Assembly: GCA_965644315.1 (NCBI GenBank) | Contig: CBFFRQ010000057.1 | Coordinates: 372,001-436,000 of the forward strand | Length of the DNA stretch: 64,000 nucleotides | Source: Caecitellus pseudoparvulus | Taxonomy: Eukaryota; Protista; Bigyra: Bicosoecida | Direction: 5' to 3' | Notes under the pieces: model-generated | What the model saw: the letters and a program-made list of their open reading frames with translations, nothing else | The model's database searches: none | What the model was told of the DNA's origin: nothing | Part shown: piece by piece, positions 10,654-45,398 of the stretch | How positions within the stretch are numbered: the first letter of the stretch is position 1 | Layout of the letters: every line of letters starts with the position of its first letter | Program-made: the position numbers and the translations under genes

Positions 10654-11355
10654 ATGGCAGACGAGGCCGCCAGAAAAGTGCCGACGAATGTGGGTAACGT
10701 TATCGAAAGCGTGAGCCGCCCGGTGACCCGCAGAGCTCAGCGCATTGAACTCGCAGGCTGCGGGAGGGATAGCAGTAAGCGATGCAGATCTGAAAGCAGC
10801 ATTCCACTTCTTGGACTCCAAAGGCAAGGGCAAGATCACCATGGCGGACTTGAAACAGTGCGATCCTGAAACGGCTATGAAACGCTGGCGGGGCACCCAC
10901 TCTTTGTGTGCTGCGTTGATGCAGAAAGCTTGCCCCATTCTACCCTGACATGCCAGTGAAGGAGTATGCTTTCCTCATGGGTGACTCGAAGAGCCTCTCC
11001 TGTGCGGCAATTGGCGCGGGTGCGCTGCGAGGCAAACTATGCACTCGACGCGCCGCCATGCACAGTGCACGACTTGAAGGAGCTCCTCGCTGACAATGAG
11101 ATCACGGGATTCGACCCTGTCGCAGAGGCATTCAAGGTGTACGACCCAGAAGGCACAGGGTTCGCTGACACAGACATCATGAGGCAGGTGTTCACGGGGT
11201 TGGGATACACCGACCTTAGCGACGAGGACCTGGACATCCTTGTGGAGGCAGCTGACAAGGATGGCGATGGGTTAGTGAGCTTGGAGGACTTCCGCAGCAT
11301 GGTGTATGCGGCAGGCAGCACTGACCCTGCGAAAGGCACGGCTGCCGGCCAATGA
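10654..11355 (+). CDS. EF-hand Ca2+-binding protein (calmodulin/centrin-like), about 3 introns
   Basis: AAFHFLDSKGKGKITMADLK, AFKVYDPEGTG and ADKDGDGLVSLEDF EF loops across exons. Confidence 0.8.
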
Positions 11356-23377: not shown

Positions 23378-25484
23378 TCACAAGCGAGGCTTCTTGCGCT
23401 GGCCGATGGTGCTGGCTTGCTGGTCCGCGACGAGGGCGGCAGCACGCATGACCTCTCGGGGGTTGCCCGCAGAGATGGTGCGGAAGTAGTCCACGGCATG
23501 GGAGTCCACATCCTGGCGGTCCTGCACCTCGAAGAAGTTCCCTGAGTAGTGGTAGTGCAGCAGCTGGCTGTGCAGGGCTGGGCGGTCCAGGGGCGGCACG
23601 GCCAGCCGCGTGCCACGGGGGCTGCGCACTTGCTCGTACATGCTGGTGTGGAAGGAGTTCCGGTAGGAGTCAGCGACGAGTGTGAAGCCGCGCTTGAAGG
23701 TGCCGCTGGGCGTGACGCCGTCGGGGCCCAGGACGCGCCCCAGGGACGCCAGGGACACCTGCTCCATGGGCACGGTCTGCCCGTACAGTTTGATGTCGGA
23801 GGGCTCGTAGCACCAGTTCACACCGTCCACAGCCAGCAGCACTGGGTGCTCGTGTGTCTGCCGCAGCTCTGCGACGAGGTCCAGCAGGCAGTCGGTGGCG
23901 AAGGGGGGGTGCCGCACCCCCCACTCCACCATGTCGGCCAGCGTGGCGCCGGAGCGGTCCACGTCCTCCGCCTTCAGCAGCTGGGGCAGGTTGGAGGTGA
24001 AGGTGGAGGGGTCCCACGCCTCCCCCGCCGCCTCGGCCGCTGCCTTGCGGCGTGCCTTCTCGCCGTCCTCTTCCTTTCGCAGGGCTGCCTTGGCAGCCAT
24101 CACCTCCTCATCAGCGGCCAGGGGCAAGTACTTGTCCCGCGGGTAGCTGCCTCGCTGCGGCACGTCGGCCAGCAGGTGAGCGTTGACGTCCTTGATGTGC
24201 TTCAGCGTCTCCAGCGCCATGTCGGGCTGGTCGGCCCAGCCCGGGCGGCTGGTGGACGGCACGTGGTACAGGGCTTGGCGGAACCAGGCGAAGCAGTCCG
24301 GCACGAACACCGTGATCCAGCCATTGCGGCGGGCATAGTACAGGGCGTACGCCAGCGTCGCGCTCTTGCCGATGCCGCGCGGCCCCGTCAGCAGCCGGAA
24401 GGGCAGGTCCTTCGCAGCGACGCCACGGGCGTCCCCGCCCACGGCCACACCGGCCTCCACGGCGCCAGACTCGGCGTTGTAGTCCAGGGGAAGGCTGGGC
24501 TGGGTGGAGGCGGGCGGGGGCTCCGCCACGCCAGTGGGCCACTGCTGCAGCGCGCCCGTCACTGTGTCCACCGTATCCTGGCTGGCGTGCTTGAAGGCGT
24601 CCAGCGCGCGCACAAGCTCCCGCATGTGGGGGCGCAGCATGAGGGCCACGTGCCCTGACAGGGCGAACTCCGTGCCGAGATCCCCTGGTGGGCCCTCAGG
24701 CATGAGCTGGTGCATGTCCACGCTGGCATCCATAGGGAAGTACTTGCCGTCGTGCTCGGCCGTGTGCTGTGGGGTGCAGGGTGGGAGGGGGCGTGGGGGG
24801 GGGCACGGCAGCTCAGACACAGCACTGCACACGCACAGCAAGGGGGTCGTCCTCCGACGTGTAGTACTGGGAGTCGTACACGACGTTGCTCATGTAGGGG
24901 TGGGGCGGAACGGTGTCTTTGTTGTCCCCGCCCTCGCTCCACAGCGATGCCCGCAGCGGCAGGTCCCCCTCTCGAGATGCCAGCACTCGCAGGCGTTCTA
25001 GGCGCTCGTACTGTGCCAAGAACGCGTCTGCCAGCTCGCTGTCGCCCTGGTGCAGGAAGGTGGCGAGGCTGCGCCACTGAGGTGCCATCCGTTCCAATTC
25101 CGCTGCCAAGCCCGCCCGGGCGGCATCTGACGCGCTCTCCCACTTGTGTGCCAGGGAAGCCATGGCATCCAGCTGCCTGGACAGCACGGCTTTGGCCTGC
25201 ACCTGTGTCTGTGCGTCCATGGTGTCGCCGGCGCCCGCTTCGCTGCCAAATGCCGGACTGCCGTCAGCAGCTGCCGCAGTGCTGGTGCTGCAGGCTCGGC
25301 GAGCCCTGTGAACGGTGGCGGAATCGCAGAGGCAAAGTGAAAGGGGTGTGCATGGCCTGGACTTCGTGTGTGCGGGGTCTCACCAGCTGCACCCCTTCAA
25401 AGTGCCCGCGGCAGGCAGGTTGGCGCTGATGGCACGCAGCGATGCTGCCGCGGAGAGTCCAGCTGCAGAGGCTCCGCGCAGCAT
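23378..25484 (-). CDS. DAP3: Mitochondrial small ribosomal subunit protein mS29 / DAP3
   Basis: LLTGPRGIGKSATLAYALYYARRNGWITVFVP (P-loop), PVLLAVDGVN and SAGNPRE. Presequence-like start MLRGASAAGLSAAASLRAISA. Introns near 25384-25300 and 24830-24760. Confidence 0.85.
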
Positions 25485-39037: not shown

Positions 39038-40723
39038 TCACGACGACGACGGGGGTGGCGGTGGTGGCGGTACCTGCCCTTGTGCAGCATTGTTATTCGC
39101 CAGTGAAGTGTTTTGGCCACGGTTCATGGCTGCCGCGGCACGGGATGCAGCAGCCATGAACTGAGCTGCCGCCGAGCTGGGCGCGTGCTGGTGCGCTGGT
39201 GGCACGGTGTGGGATGTTGGGAAGTGCACCATGCCAGCTTGGAACTGGGGTGCTGGCGCGGTGTACCCCATGCCTGGAGGTGCCATCGTGTGGCTGCTGG
39301 CCATGGCATGGTGCATGCTGGCGATGCGGGCTTGCAGCGCCGCAATTTGAGCCTGCTGCGCGGCAATGGTCGCTCCCATGTCGCCCGCCGGCGCGTGCGC
39401 ACCCCCTGCTGAGGATCGGTTGCCACGACTGCGCTTGCTGCGCCCTCGGCGCCTGCCGTCGCCCTCGACACCCCCTCCGCCCCCGGCAGCCTGCGCTGCC
39501 GTGGCTAAATCTGGCGCTTCCTGGCTGCTGGCGCCAGGCCTAGCCCGCCGGCGCACCCTGCGAGCAGCCGCCTCCGCCTCGTCGTCGCTGAACTCTGCGT
39601 CCGACGCCTCTTCGTCGTACCTATTGGAGGCGTCTGTGGCGGGGGCCACTCGGCACAGGGCCGGGTTCACCGTCGCGCTGTACTCCACGATGCTGACCAC
39701 GGCATCCCCAGGGGAGATGTCATCCATGTGCGCCAGGGTGTGCTCCCGCTGCACCCCCTCCTCCGCCACCGCCGCCGCCACCTCCTCCTCTGCAGTGCCT
39801 GGTGCCGCCTCTGCAGCGGGCTGGGACACCGCCGCCTGGGCCGGTCGGCACTGCGCAGCGGTGAGGCGTACGACGTAGCAGGGCTGGGACACCGCCCCGA
39901 ACACCTCGTCGATGCGACCCAGAACACGCAGCGGGGCTTGGTTCTCCCCCGCCAAGGCCAGCAGGGACCCTTCCTCCAGCACACCTGCCGCCACCTCCGC
40001 CAGCACCCCCCGAAGTGGGGAAGCCCCATGTGCCAGGCCGCCTGAGGGGGCGAGGGGAAGGGGCGCTGGTGTGCCGGCGGCTGCCCCCGGATGCTGCACG
40101 ATGACCGTGCCCTGGTCAGGCTGAGTGAACAGCACGTTGCCTGCCGGCTGGATGGTGCAGTCGGCGCCCACTGCCACCTGCAGCGGCTCGGCGAAGGTGG
40201 GGGGGGCGCTCTCGTGGGCTGTGCGCAGGGGGCCGCTGGCCTCCCCCGTGTCATCGTCATGGTCAGCTGGCCCAGCGCCGGCAGTGGGGCCGCCCGTGGC
40301 GTCCCCTGCATGTGCTTTGGGAGTCGCCTGTTGGTCGGGCTCGAGCGCGGGCGCGCCGCCGGCACCGCCCTCCTCTTCGCTGCTGCTGCCTTCGTCCAGG
40401 CTGCTGGCAGGGGCAGCCTCGTCCTCAGCTCGCTGCACTGGGACAGGCACGGGGTCTGTGTCATCTTCAGCTGATGCAGCTGCCACGGCAGCTGCCAAGA
40501 CGTCGGTCGTCATGCCCAGGTGGTCTGGGGTCCACTCTGGCTCGCGCATGGCCGCAGCAAGTTCCGCAGCGAGGTGCTCCAGGTCGCCCTGGGGGGCGGT
40601 GCCTTGAGGCAAGTCAGTGCTGGGTTGGGCAGGCAGGGATGCAATGCGTGCTGCTTCCTTTGCTTCGGCCTCTGCGTGGGCTTGCGCCACGCTCAGGTCG
40701 CTGGGGGCGCCGTTCTCAGCCAT
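39038..40723 (-). CDS. NAF1: H/ACA RNP assembly factor NAF1 (Gar1/Naf1 domain)
   Basis: VLEEGSLL...LGRIDEVFGAVSQPCYVVR and the NAF1 signature DASNRYDEE..EFSDDEAE. Confidence 0.85.
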   Translation of the reverse strand: MAENGAPSDLSVAQAHAEAEAKEAARIASLPAQPSTDLPQGTAPQGDLEHLAAELAAAMREPEWTPDHLGMTTDVLAAAVAAASAEDDTDPVPVPVQRAEDEAAPASSLDEGSSSEEEGGAGGAPALEPDQQATPKAHAGDATGGPTAGAGPADHDDDTGEASGPLRTAHESAPPTFAEPLQVAVGADCTIQPAGNVLFTQPDQGTVIVQHPGAAAGTPAPLPLAPSGGLAHGASPLRGVLAEVAAGVLEEGSLLALAGENQAPLRVLGRIDEVFGAVSQPCYVVRLTAAQCRPAQAAVSQPAAEAAPGTAEEEVAAAVAEEGVQREHTLAHMDDISPGDAVVSIVEYSATVNPALCRVAPATDASNRYDEEASDAEFSDDEAEAAARRVRRRARPGASSQEAPDLATAAQAAGGGGGVEGDGRRRGRSKRSRGNRSSAGGAHAPAGDMGATIAAQQAQIAALQARIASMHHAMASSHTMAPPGMGYTAPAPQFQAGMVHFPTSHTVPPAHQHAPSSAAAQFMAAASRAAAAMNRGQNTSLANNNAAQGQVPPPPPPPSSS

Positions 40724-40940: not shown

Positions 40941-42037
40941 ATGGCGTCTGCGGCAGCAGAGGCACAGCCGGAAGGCGTGCCGGACACCCTGTCTCCAGAT
41001 GCAGAGGAGGCCATGTTGGAGGCGGAGGACCTCTTCTTCGAAGGCGTGTTGGACGCCGCCGAAGACAAGGTGGTTGAGGTGTTGGCGAGCCACCCCGCCA
41101 ACCGGGAGGCGCTCCTGCTGCTGTGGCAGCTGCAGACGCAGCAGGTGGGTGGCGCGGGGCGAATGCTCCGCACCCTGTACACGCCCCCCTCCCCCGCTGT
41201 TGCCCGGCACAGCTGAAGGATACCGCTGCCCTCGGCACAGCACAGCGACTGGCGTCGCTGCCCGGCGATGGCGCCGCTGCGGCTGACATGCTCATCGCCT
41301 CCGCCGCTGCCGTGTCTCCCAGCAGCAAGGGGCAAGCTGTGCTGGAGGGTTTCCTGGCGGCAGACGCCAGCAGTGGCGCGCTCTCCCGTGCTGGCGCCAA
41401 GGCCCGTGCCGTGCTGGTGGAGCTGGAGGGGGGGGGCATGTCCGCCACCACGGCAGCCTGGCTAGCACCGCCCCTGCGCGAGGCGGCCAAGGCAGCCCTG
41501 GGCCTGCTGGCATCCCCGCCTGCAGACGATGCAGGCGCGCCCGTGTCCCCTGCAGCGCTGGAAGAGGCACTGTACACTGCGTGGGGTGAGGCTGGAGCGG
41601 CGGGGGGGGAGGCGGAGGCGGCCGGAGCCGTGGAGGACATGCTGGGCGTGCTGCGGTGCGCCCGGGCCAGTGCGGACTTCCCCACGCAGCAGGTGCTGCC
41701 TTTGGCGCTGGCCCTACTGGCGTGCTTGCTGCTGCAGGTGGGGGAGGCGGGCGCAGCGGGGGATGTGGTGGCGGCGGCATCCGGTGTGGAGGCGCCCCTG
41801 GCGTGCAGTGGGGATGTGAACATCACAGGCGCGCGGTGCTTGGTGTCGGCGAGCGGCGGCGACGCCCAGGCGAGGGGTGACTCCGAGTCACTCGCGGCCA
41901 CAGGCGGCTTGGCGCTGTCGCCCCTCATTCGCCGCCGCCTGCTGACCCTACCCGCAGCTGCGCCGGCACAGGAGGGGGGCGCAGAGGACGCGTACGACCC
42001 ACGCCTGGACGAGCGTGATCCCTTCTTCGGGATGTGA
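40941..42037 (+). CDS. Hypothetical helical (possibly TPR-like) protein, one intron
   Basis: Exon 1 (MASAAAEAQ...LQTQQ) joins in frame through gtgggt...cacag (about 41144-41212) to the ORF ending YDPRLDERDPFFGM. AATGCA follows the stop. Confidence 0.6.
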
Positions 42038-42038
42038 G

Positions 42039-42046
42039 AATGCATT
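42039..42046. terminator. Palindromic AATGCATT, putative shared 3'-end signal (orphan / SDHC)
   Basis: Occupies 8 of the 14 bp between the two stop codons. Confidence 0.7.
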
Positions 42047-42051
42047 TGCGG

Positions 42052-42671
42052 TTAGAACTCCACGACGGCAGCGAGCAGTGTGGCGGTGGCGGTGCCCGCC
42101 AGCAGCGCATAGGCGCCCTGCTCCACCTCCTTGATCTCATGCCCCTTCACCTGGTCCCACATCTGCGCGCAGGGAAACGATTCGTGTGGGCCCCTGCCTG
42201 GCGCGCCTTCAAGCGGGGGGGCGTGCGCGAGGGCGTACCAGATGACGCATGCCATGGCCGAAATGGTAGGCGAGGGCACCGCCCACCGCGGCGCGCACCA
42301 AGGGAGCCACGCCAGCCTCGTGCAGGGCGGTGGTCATCTCCAGAATGCTGGTACCTGTGCCTGCCAAGCCCAGGGACACTGCTGCCAGGCCTGTGAGGCG
42401 GGGTGGCGGCTGATGTGCGGGGGCAGCCGGCCTGCGGAAATCCGCGTCACGCACCGACTGTCATGCCCACGCCAGTGCCACGGAAAGCGATGGAGGTCAT
42501 AGCGTTGAGGGGCAGGCGGTAAATGGTCAAATGGGGCGACAGGGGGCGCTGCACTTCCCCAGCCTTGGTGGCCAGCATGGCTCGGGCCGCCACGGGCGTA
42601 GCGGCTGCCACTGGCGCCTGCACAGCAGACAGGCGGGCAGCCATGCCGGCAGTAGCGCGGGCGAGGGCCAT
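42052..42671 (-). CDS. SDHC: Succinate dehydrogenase cytochrome b560 subunit (SDH3), 2 introns
   Basis: RPLSPHLTIYRLPLNAMTSIAFRGTG and ALAYHFGHGMRHL|MWD. Presequence MALARATAGMAARL. Confidence 0.93.
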
Positions 42672-42750
42672 GTCGTCGAGGGATTCGCGCGTGTGGGAGC
42701 ACAGGTGCTTCGTGTCTGTTGGTAGCGGCCGGGTTGCCGTTCGTTGGTTG

Positions 42751-42756
42751 TGCATT
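42751..42756 (-). terminator. AATGCA putative 3'-end signal (SDHD)
   Basis: 31 nt after the stop. Confidence 0.55.
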
Positions 42757-42787
42757 TCGTTTTGGTAGTGCCCCGGGCTGAGGCCGC

Positions 42788-43479
42788 TCACGCGTCGGCC
42801 TCCTCGGCAGCCTTGGCCTTGGGGGGCGCCACCCACAGGCTCTTCACGCCGGCTGACAGCCCGACGTCGGCGAAGTTGAGGCGGGCCAGGGCAGCGGCGG
42901 TGAGGACAGTGACGCCTGCCAGGGCCATAAGGGCCATGCGCTGCTGCTGGGGCTCCCAGATGTAGTCCACGATGACGCTGCGCATGCCGATGTGTGTGTG
43001 CAGGGGGATGGCGACGTTCAGCACCATGTCTGCGACGCTGGTCATGGGCGCGCCGAACAAGAGAGCCACTGGCACACCGGCGGCCAGTGCGTAAGACGAG
43101 TAGTGGTACACCTCCTTCACTGTGCTGGCCTTCACGGAGCCGGGGATGAGAGCTGCAGGGGGGAGGACAATGCAGAGGTGAGGGGGCACAAATAGGTGTG
43201 CAGTCGGGGGCCGGCCAGAGTCGTCCTGGGCAGGCCTGTCACCGTGCGTGGTGCATGTGGGCACCTGCGGAACTTACCGTCGGCCTGGCTGTAGACACCC
43301 TGCGACGTAGCCATGCCGCGCGCAGCAACTGCGAAACGCACAGGGACCCCAAGGGGGGATGAGCGCGGATAGCACACAGAGGGGGGGAGCGGGCGCTGGT
43401 TCGCACTGTGCAGGGAGGGCAGGGCTGGGCGGCTGCTCAGCGCCAGGTGAGCTGCTGATGTGGCAGCCTTTCGCATCAT
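42788..43479 (-). CDS. SDHD: Succinate dehydrogenase small membrane anchor (SDH4/CybS), spliced
   Basis: YHYSSYALAAGVPVAL...DMVLNVAIPLHTHIGMRSVIVDYI. Presequence MMRKAATSAAHL|...AARGMATS. Confidence 0.9.
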
Positions 43480-43834
43480 GGTGACCGGTGGGTGGCGTGT
43501 GCGCTGGTTGGTGGGCGACCATAGCACTGTGACGTAGGAGGGGGCAAATGCTGGAGGCGTGAGAGGGTTTGGCCTTGCGCGAGGGCTGCGCTGCGCAGGG
43601 TCGGAGTGTGGGGGGGGTAGAGAGCACAGCCCAGCAGCGCGAAGGGCTCCAGGTGCAGTCACGCGTCAAAACGCATGCACATATCTGCCCGCACCCCGCC
43701 CTGTACTTCACTCCCACTCGCCGTGGTCGTGCGCTACGTCGCCTTGGCTCCGGTGCCTTTCAAGAGCAGGCTTGGCGGCTGTTGCCAGGCACAATTCCGC
43801 ACTGCTGCAGAGGCAAGGCGCGGCACAAGCAGCC

Positions 43835-44237
43835 ATGTCCACCGTGCCCACGCCCGATGGGCCAGTGTTCACGTCCAGCTTCATGAATGGGTTCTTCAGC
43901 AAGGAGCGGCGCCTGGCGCAGATGGGCAGCCACCACGAGGCAGACCTGCAGGCTCGGGAAGCAACACACATCGTGCACTACCGCAACGCGATCGAGAAGT
44001 GCGTGGGGCGCAGCCGCGCAGCGTGGCCAGATGCCCATGCACCCCCTCCCTGCCCCGCCCCACCGCAGCAAGAGGTTGAAGGCGCACCCTGGCCACACCA
44101 CTCGGCGCCCCGTCAGCGTCGTGCGGCGTGACCCGCTGCTGCGCGATGGACTGGGACACTACGCTGGGTGGAAGTGGCACCAGGCCTACGTGCAGGGCAC
44201 CCTGTCCAGGTTCATGCAGGGCAAGCCCATCTTGTGA
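43835..44237 (+). CDS. Orphan 110-aa protein, one intron (43999-44068)
   Basis: ATG in gccATG context. Removing a 70-nt gtgcgt...ccgcag intron gives a 333-nt CDS: MSTVPTPDGPVFTSSFMNGFFSKERRLAQMGSHHEADLQAREATHIVHYRNAIENKRLKAHPGHTTRRPVSVVRRDPLLRDGLGHYAGWKWHQAYVQGTLSRFMQGKPIL. G/C-ending codons dominate, and AATGCA follows at 44273. Confidence 0.7.
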
Positions 44238-44272
44238 AGGGGTGCTTGCCCTGCCGCCGCCGCAGCAGGCTG

Positions 44273-44280
44273 AATGCATT
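44273..44280. terminator. Palindromic AATGCATT, putative shared 3'-end signal (110-aa orphan / SDHB)
   Basis: Centred in the 75-bp gap between the stops. Confidence 0.7.
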
Positions 44281-44312
44281 GACTCGCAGCAGGCGAACTG
44301 CAGCGCCCCGCC

Positions 44313-45398
44313 TCAGTGCTTGGCTTCGTACGCCTTGGGCATCTCCTTGATGAGCTTGGCGATGGCCCGGGCAGGGTTGAGGCCCTTGGGGCACACGCGC
44401 GTGCAGTTCATGATCTGGTGGCACCGGTACAGCTTGAACTCGTCATCCAGCGCAGCCAGGCGCTTGGACGTGGCGGCGTCACGGCTGTCAGCCACCCACC
44501 GGTACGCCTGCATGAGCACTGCAGGGCCCAGGTACTTGCCTGAGGAGCCGTTCCACCAGTAGGAGGGGCAGGAGGTGGAGCAGCAGGCGCAGAGGATGCA
44601 CTCGTACATGCCGTCCAGCTTCTTGCGGTCTGCGGAGCTCTGCAGGTGCTCCAGGTTGGGACTGCTCTCCTCCTTCGCCTGCAGCCACGGCTCAATGCTC
44701 TTGTACTGGTCGTAGAAGACGTTGAGGTCGGGGACGAGGTCCTTGATGACGTACATGTGCGGCAGGGGGTACACCTTGTGCGCCTCCTTGCTGGCGGTGT
44801 CGATGTAGGTCAGGCACGCCAAGCCGTTCACGCCGTCGATGTTCATGGCGCAGCTGCCGCAGATGCCCTCACGGCAGGAACTGTGAAGGAGGGGGGCGTC
44901 GGGGCATGTGGCACCAGCGCTGGGACGCCAGGTGAAGTGAGGCGCAACGCCGTGTGAAGCGCGCACGCACCGCCGGAAGGTCAGGGTGGGGTCCTGTTCG
45001 TTCTTGATCTTGATGAGGGCATCCAGCAGCATGGGGCCACATCTGCAGTCGGAGGGGGAGGGGTCGGCGCAGCATCGTGCAGTGGTGCTGGGTGGTGTTT
45101 CGCCGCACCACCAGCGTGACGCACTCGTCCATGTTCACGGGGTAGGACGCAGTGTAAGGCTTCTGGCCAGGCACATCAGGGTCCCATCGGTAGATCTTGA
45201 AGAACTTGATGTTGTCTCCCTGTGCAAGGCGATTCCAAGCCGTGTGCGGGACCCTGCGAAGCTGGGCGGTACACCCGCACTCACAGATGGTGCTGATGCC
45301 TTCAGGCTGCCTGCCGTGCCGGACAGAGCGCGGGCAGCAGTGGCAGTCGCCGTGGGCGCTGCGCGGCGCACCGCCGCAGTTGTAGCTGCAGCAAGCAT
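44313..45398 (-). CDS. SDHB: Succinate dehydrogenase iron-sulfur subunit (SDH2), about 3 introns
   Basis: [16 protein letters not shown]|[27 protein letters not shown] and [17 protein letters not shown]. Presequence [14 protein letters not shown]. Confidence 0.97.

Follow-up and report, generated by a model that had tools for sequence, protein, structure and literature searches.

How do the nuclear genes that encode three out of the four subunits making up succinate dehydrogenase (SDH, respiratory complex II) come to adjoin one another in a marine protist? The question is raised by a stretch of 64,000 nucleotides from the bicosoecid Caecitellus pseudoparvulus (contig CBFFRQ010000057.1, positions 372,001 to 436,000), here called the window, in which SDHC (42052-42671), SDHD (42788-43479) and SDHB (44313-45398) are all on the minus strand and together occupy 3347 bp (42052-45398), with one small gene between SDHD and SDHB. 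Mitochondrial genes are usually pictured as moving to the nucleus one by one, and in model organisms the nuclear genes of any one complex are scattered. No report of a nuclear cluster of complex II genes was found in the literature searched. What is new here is that the nuclear linkage of SDHB, SDHD and SDHC is old and common to a clade with Cafeteria. It is nearly certain that this is a real and expressed nuclear cluster which descends from the ancestor of the Cafeteria-containing clade.

Identity, expression and nuclear location of the three genes

The gene models are based on GT..AG introns and on joints in RNA contigs. The RNA evidence consists of assembled environmental metatranscriptome contigs, rather than raw reads, which come from two independent runs and belong to this strain or to one very near to it. 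Protein domains were searched in the exons with Pfam at the curated cut-offs (27 bits for Fer2_3, 27 bits for CybS and 25.8 bits for Sdh_cyt). The database searches took single exons as queries, for the small gene and SDHC as well, and the joined models were used in local comparisons with the related loci.

SDHB, the iron-sulfur subunit (Sdh2), has four exons (45398-45285, 45219-45125, 45042-44971 and 44880-44313) and a product of 282 amino acids. Its last exon matches Fer2_3 with 78 bits as well as the Fer4 dicluster domains Fer4_17 and Fer4_8, and the model contains all three cysteine motifs (CxxxxCxxC...C, CxxCxxCxxxCP and CxxxxxCxxxCP). It is 72-74% identical to named stramenopile SDHB, and its domains and cysteine motifs identify it as Sdh2. 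SDHC, the large anchor subunit of cytochrome b (Sdh3, cytochrome b560), is encoded by three exons (42671-42455, 42390-42239 and 42162-42052; 159 amino acids), and this model is the sole open GT..AG solution. Sdh3 was recognised by an Sdh_cyt match together with the motifs RP(L/I)SPHL and H..G.RHL.WD, including the heme histidine. Exon 1 matches Sdh_cyt with 33 bits, above the cut-off, and the spliced product carries RPLSPHLTIY and HGMRHLMWD, both of which are kept in the related loci L004, L010 and L019; SDHC is accordingly identified as Sdh3. SDHD, the small anchor subunit (CybS, Sdh4), has two modelled exons (43479-43278 and 43152-42788; 188 amino acids). Its main exon matches CybS with 55.7 bits, its motifs are HTHIGMRSVIVDY, and an alignment with relatives shows that H51, H53, D62 and Y63, residues of the heme and quinone sites, are invariant in four lineages. 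The profile and the conserved His and Asp-Tyr residues identify it as Sdh4.

The N-termini of all three products are rich in Ala, Arg, Ser and Thr, and within their first 38-56 residues there are several Arg or Lys and no Asp or Glu. The presequence-like part of SDHB and of SDHD is encoded by a first exon of its own, which in SDHB amounts to 38 amino acids. The two SDHC introns (~42163-42238 and ~42391-42454) are spliced out in RNA contigs X15 and X16, and the three SDHB introns (44881-44970, 45043-45124 and 45220-45284) are skipped in RNA contigs, the last of them in one run only. For SDHD, an RNA contig covers 42836-42993, and the 5' exon and the intron are modelled without RNA cover. Every intron of the gene models that is covered by RNA is confirmed by RNA joints.

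The genome searched comprises 30.6 Mb in 215 contigs, in which a profile search found one match each for Fer2_3, CybS and Sdh_cyt, all in the cluster. The assembly includes the mitochondrial contig, C213 (L017), in whose cox1 11 in-frame TGA codons occur, TGA being read as sense; the 4.3-kb cox1 stretch sampled from this contig has 26% GC versus ~66% GC for the cluster. A sequence-only reading of the window had placed the three genes on one strand within 3.35 kb and 116 bp between SDHD and SDHC, and these coordinates were confirmed. It had also described one small gene between SDHD and SDHB, which proved to be spliced and expressed and lies on the plus strand, a point that reading had left unstated. 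The claim that each SDH gene has its own introns, a presequence-like N-terminus and an AATGCA motif agrees with the RNA joints of SDHC and SDHB, the acid-free N-termini and the sequence itself, the intron of SDHD being modelled. A nuclear copy of mitochondrial DNA, which had been argued against, is ruled out by the difference in GC, the difference in the reading of TGA and the GT..AG introns that are removed in RNA contigs. A bacterial operon had likewise been dismissed, and what lies here is three intron-bearing, expressed nuclear genes, apparently separate. SDHA, said to be outside the window, is on contig C30, with SDHAF2 on C47 and SDHAF4 on C88; the expected absence of sdh genes from mitochondrial DNA was borne out in that C213 gave no sdh match.

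Two independent metagenome scaffolds of the same species from ENA have the identical gene order, and a contig of 8.4 kb from a different DNA run extends across the entire cluster at ~99% identity. Relatives were found with the SDHB last exon and the SDHD alignment as queries, and the contigs around the matches, mostly metagenomic, were then read. A word search with SDHD gave only 13 matches, none of which has a name. In addition to the two scaffolds of the species itself, the linkage is present in nine distinct places in metagenome and other public assemblies, which fall into three arrangement classes; in the formulas below, the arrowheads give the direction of each gene. The first class, B> (<small gene) D> C>, includes the window and L004/L005/L018, in which the flanks are collinear and the products are 77-86% (SDHB, the figure varying with the stretch aligned), 55% (SDHD) and 43% (SDHC) identical. 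The second, <C D> B>, is found in L010, and L019 shows <C D> up to the point where its contig ends. The SDHB of L010 is 83% identical to that of Cafeteria roenbergensis, and L010 is a cellular contig with Gar1, DAP3 and an apparent SDHC intron, seen as two adjacent matches with overlapping reading frames. Its EF-hand, DAP3 and Gar1-like genes are also found in the window, so that the wider neighbourhood is conserved between both lineages, with rearrangements. The third class is a head-to-head pair, <B D>, at four loci (L009, L022/L023, L065 and the contig of P0124); the SDHB match is in two pieces, as with an intron, in L009 (39% GC) and in several pieces in L022/L023. A small open reading frame beside SDHD in L009 was considered and has only a generic Rossmann motif. 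A search for SDHA in the clusters of the relatives found none.

In all classes SDHD adjoins SDHB, wherever SDHC is present the order on the DNA is C-D-B, and inversions of individual genes distinguish one class from another. In an IQ-TREE tree of SDHB, the cluster-bearers, Cafeteria and a EukProt transcriptome sequence form one clade (SH-aLRT 99; 97 with FastTree), separate from the ochrophyte, oomycete and insect sequences. This tree covers the cluster-bearing loci that have an SDHB row, and the placement of the organism rests on this single-gene tree. The 64-kb window shares no genes with L009, L023 and L065 other than the SDH genes; therefore, the link between SDHB and SDHD has outlived all other neighbours there. 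The cluster is a conserved nuclear gene cluster, whose linkage extends to diverged species beyond the surrounding synteny, and the linkage predates the split of this organism and its Cafeteria-like relatives.

The sequence-only reading had described the order of the genes as a reversal of the ancestral polarity. It is better described as retention of the chromosomal order C-D-B of sdhCD(A)B with every gene inverted where it stands, and the in-between arrangements occur in relatives. Its suggestion that synteny be sought in related protists was answered in part: the genes are linked in the relatives of the Cafeteria clade and unlinked within 10 kb in Nannochloropsis and Pythium.

Origin of the cluster

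SDHB, SDHD and SDHC appear to be ordinary working nuclear genes for mitochondrial complex II. Each would be a transcription unit of its own, with its own introns, a putative N-terminal targeting sequence and an AAUGCA polyadenylation signal, and the proteins would be made in the cytosol, imported and joined with SDHA from another contig. The linkage was almost certainly already present in the common ancestor of a heterotrophic stramenopile clade including Cafeteria (bicosoecids). From there the C-D-B chromosomal order may have been kept as single genes were flipped, with <C D> B> giving rise to <B D> (C>) and this in turn to B> D> C>.

The reading that we favour, tentatively, is that the cluster is a relic of a mitochondrial sdh3-sdh4-sdh2 block. 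The three genes would have left the mitochondrion together on one piece of DNA and been activated where they landed. The set is exactly sdh2, sdh3 and sdh4 without SDHA, SDHD stands between SDHC and SDHB as in sdhCD(A)B, SDHA and the genes of the assembly factors SDHAF2 and SDHAF4 are outside the cluster, and the presequence-like parts of SDHB and SDHD are separate first exons. A further point in its favour is that a single event accounts for what would else take two separate moves into the same 3 kb. Gene-rich mitochondrial DNAs retain sdh2, sdh3 and sdh4 (PMC5910586; PMC7194472), and in cryptophyte mitochondrial DNA sdh3 and sdh4 form a syntenic block (PMC5910586). The likeness to the mitochondrial genes of jakobids, red algae and cryptophytes lies in the identical subset without the flavoprotein and in the sdh3-sdh4 adjacency known there; unlike these, the present cluster is nuclear, has ~66% GC, the standard code and introns, and coexists with a mitochondrial contig without an sdh match. 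In the bacterial sdhCDAB operon of the E. coli type, the same three homologous subunits adjoin, with D between C and B. The nuclear cluster differs from it in the lack of SDHA, in its spliceosomal introns, own poly(A) signals, presequences and apparently separate nuclear units, and in that each of its genes is flipped relative to the C-D-B order.

Several points weigh against a block relic. By chance, SDHD would be in the middle in 1 of 3 cases and SDHA would be the one left out in 1 of 4, so that together these features give modest support only. To our knowledge, no stramenopile mitochondrial DNA retains sdh genes, and any block transfer would therefore be very old. Outside the clade, linkage was examined in Nannochloropsis gaditana and Pythium insidiosum, and neither species showed SDHD or SDHC within 10 kb of its SDHB; accordingly, a relic would have disappeared from these lineages, or else the transfer concerned this clade alone. 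Inside the clade, L008 (5.5 kb) has SDHB without SDHD or SDHC, and at the <B D> loci SDHC was not found nearby by tblastn, by the clade profile or by a profile widened with viral sequences. The EF-hand, DAP3 and Gar1-like genes that L010 has in common with the window (10657-11235, 23432-24769 and 39581-40207) suggest that part of the conservation may be passive, owing to slow rearrangement. Finally, single-gene trees cannot tell a block transfer from three separate transfers.

Alternatively, the genes may have become nuclear separately, been joined later in the ancestor of the clade and been kept together for balanced co-expression, through a shared chromatin neighbourhood or through shared or overlapping promoters. 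This secondary assembly is possible, although we consider it somewhat unlikely. The head-to-head pairs <B D> and <C D> in relatives would permit shared bidirectional promoters, and in the window the SDHC transcript begins within the 3' end of SDHD, the two genes being 116 bp apart. The persistence of the B-D link in L009, L023 and L065 after the other synteny was gone is what selection would be expected to produce, and the unlinked genes of Nannochloropsis and Pythium fit a late joining. However, two independent relocations to the same 3 kb are needed, and in a genome of 30.6 Mb the chance of finding two given single-copy genes no more than 3.35 kb from a third is ~5e-8 without selection. Neither the exclusion of SDHA and the assembly factors nor the middle position of SDHD is explained, and no two SDH genes share a promoter region in the window. 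A promoter motif common to the three SDH upstream regions was also sought, and it was rejected in that they have no common word of at least 7 bases and share 6-mers at the level of shuffled sequences.

Nuclear functional clusters such as those for nitrate assimilation and the yeast DAL genes are comparable in that non-homologous genes of the same function are kept adjacent in different species, with internal rearrangements. Those clusters consist of pathway enzymes and transporters and were assembled secondarily, whereas the genes here encode structural subunits of one respiratory complex and are of mitochondrial ancestry. If the cluster is a relic of a block transfer, it would be a rare physical trace of the movement of several genes at once from mitochondrion to nucleus; if it is not, it would plainly exemplify selection that keeps subunits of one complex linked. 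Both readings are testable with existing protist genomes.

Similar modules in giant viruses

Besides the two origins that the sequence-only reading had offered, a rearranged block transfer and a secondary assembly, giant viruses with the trio <C D> B> are a third possible source or sink. A scan of IMG/VR, prompted by the viral-looking contig L014, gave 40 contigs with SDHB. In 21 giant-virus contigs (L032-L060, e.g. L055:1334-4623) the arrangement is <SDHC SDHD> SDHB>, and 12 of these 21 also have <SDHA beside SDHC. The module was found with the SDHC and SDHD profiles of the clade, and examples were verified by Pfam. In the four-gene form, <SDHA <SDHC SDHD> SDHB>, the genes abut or overlap, and the order and strands of the C-D-B part are those of the cellular loci L010 and L019. 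The giant virus PkV RF01 reportedly carries the four subunit genes together in a single region of 8 kb, and its SDHA and SDHB are described as deep branches among the eukaryotes (10.1101/2020.07.30.228163).

The module of PkV RF01 and of marine Mimiviridae fragments (10.1101/2020.07.30.228163) thus resembles the cellular cluster in that C, D and B adjoin, with <C D> B> as in L010. It differs in that SDHA is usually beside SDHC, introns are lacking, the genes abut or overlap and the anchor subunits have low similarity to those of the clade; the window, for its part, has B> D> C> and an extra small gene. The genes of the window were considered as a giant-virus module and rejected as such, since they have introns and nuclear neighbours and their SDHB belongs to the cellular clade with Cafeteria.

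An exchange with giant viruses could have run in either direction: the clade may have taken the C-D-B block from an integrated virus that replaced the native genes, or a virus may have captured <C D> B> from a host and added SDHA later. We regard such an exchange as unlikely overall, and of the two directions capture by a virus is the more likely. Its basis is the match in order and strands between the 21 viral contigs (12 with <A) and L010 and L019, along with the single 8-kb region of PkV RF01. In the SDHB tree the main virus clade is separate from the Cafeteria-containing clade; a tree that forces the two together is not rejected (p-AU 0.56) and is 2.3 log-likelihood units above the free quick tree. 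On the other hand, viral SDHC is no nearer to L010 and L019 (45-54 bits) than to chicken SDHC (44 bits), which implies that any exchange was old or that the match in arrangement is a coincidence. The clade profile of SDHD barely detects viral SDHD (E about 1e-3), and, given that three arrangements were seen in hosts, a coincidental match of the viral one has odds of ~1 in 8 to 1 in 12. Uptake from a virus would be expected to bring SDHA as well, and introns are present in the host genes, whose presequence-like parts have first exons of their own. Among the best 120 matches of a word search with viral SDHC, there was no named cellular protein, only unnamed marine sequences that are most likely viral.

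Two further contigs, L014 and L064, are AT-rich and apparently intron-less, and their SDHB is nested inside the cellular Cafeteria-containing clade and not in the main virus clade. L014 carries the virus-associated families DUF5760 and Mrr_cat_2, and L064 (27% GC) has <SDHA SDHB> and an acyl-CoA dehydrogenase. These putatively viral contigs may be separate, later captures from such hosts, and as such they would lend some weight to exchange.

Capture of a host block by a virus is compatible with a block-transfer relic and with secondary assembly alike. The full sequence of events, in which a mitochondrial sdh3-sdh4-sdh2 block moved to the nucleus whole and the viral <A <C D> B> module was then captured from a cluster-bearing host with the order kept throughout, is improbable in our estimation. 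The matching arrangement in giant viruses of the ocean nevertheless provides a concrete hypothesis on the source of the viral complex II module.

Transcription units, 3' signals and the small gene

AATGCA occurs on the gene strand after the stop of every SDH gene, at 42046-42041 for SDHC, 42756-42751 for SDHD and 44280-44275 for SDHB, and for SDHC, SDHB and the small gene the RNA contigs end 7-9 nt beyond the signal. Between the SDHD stop (42788-42790) and the SDHC ATG (42671-42669) there are exactly 116 bp (42672-42787, minus strand), a spacer that contains both the AATGCA signal of SDHD and the start of the SDHC transcript. A single SDHC RNA contig of 580 nt spans 42034-42753, with its 5' limit inside the SDHD signal and its 3' end 7 nt past the AATGCA of SDHC. 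It follows that either the SDHC promoter overlaps the 3' end of SDHD or SDHD transcripts read through.

If the latter, SDHD and SDHC could be one dicistronic, operon-like unit and not two independent genes, which seems to us quite unlikely. The spacer is just 116 bp, and the SDHC contig reaches 42753, beyond the site where cleavage of SDHD is expected, ~10 nt below its signal at 42751. Nevertheless, SDHD has its own AATGCA 31 nt past its stop, and no RNA contig joins SDHD coding sequence to SDHC. SDHC, SDHB and the small gene have separate RNA contigs and AATGCA signals of their own, the one overlap being the SDHC contig that begins in the SDHD 3' signal; contigs of this kind cannot show transcript ends. 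In L004, a few hundred bases separate the SDHD stop from the first SDHC-like sequence, and SDHD and SDHC of L010 and L019 lie on opposite strands. As for an assembly artefact, or a chance neighbourhood without history, its probability is practically nil, given the independent DNA contigs and scaffolds that cross the cluster, the recurrence of the linkage in diverged relatives with 33-72% GC and the chance of ~5e-8; the artefact check that the sequence-only reading had proposed thus upheld the linkage.

The palindrome AATGCATT provides a 3' signal on both strands to two convergent gene pairs. At 42039-42046 it supplies AATGCA to SDHC (minus strand) and to a convergent plus-strand gene that ends at 42037, and its second copy, at 44273-44280, serves the small gene (plus strand) and SDHB (minus strand). 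The RNA contig of the small gene runs to 44285 and that of SDHB to 44266, and hence the two overlap by 20 nt (44266-44285).

The small gene (43835-44237, plus strand) has two exons (43835-43998 and 44069-44237) and encodes 110 amino acids. It is tail-to-tail with SDHB and head-to-head with SDHD, from whose start its own start is separated by a divergent intergenic region of 355 bp (43480-43834). Its product, searched exon by exon only, gave no Pfam match, and the gene was not found in the second and third arrangement classes. It is spliced and expressed: an RNA contig that spans 43678-44285 lacks its GT..AG intron (43999-44068). In L004/L005/L018, a sequence 41% identical to the N-terminal half of its product is present in the same place and on the same strand.

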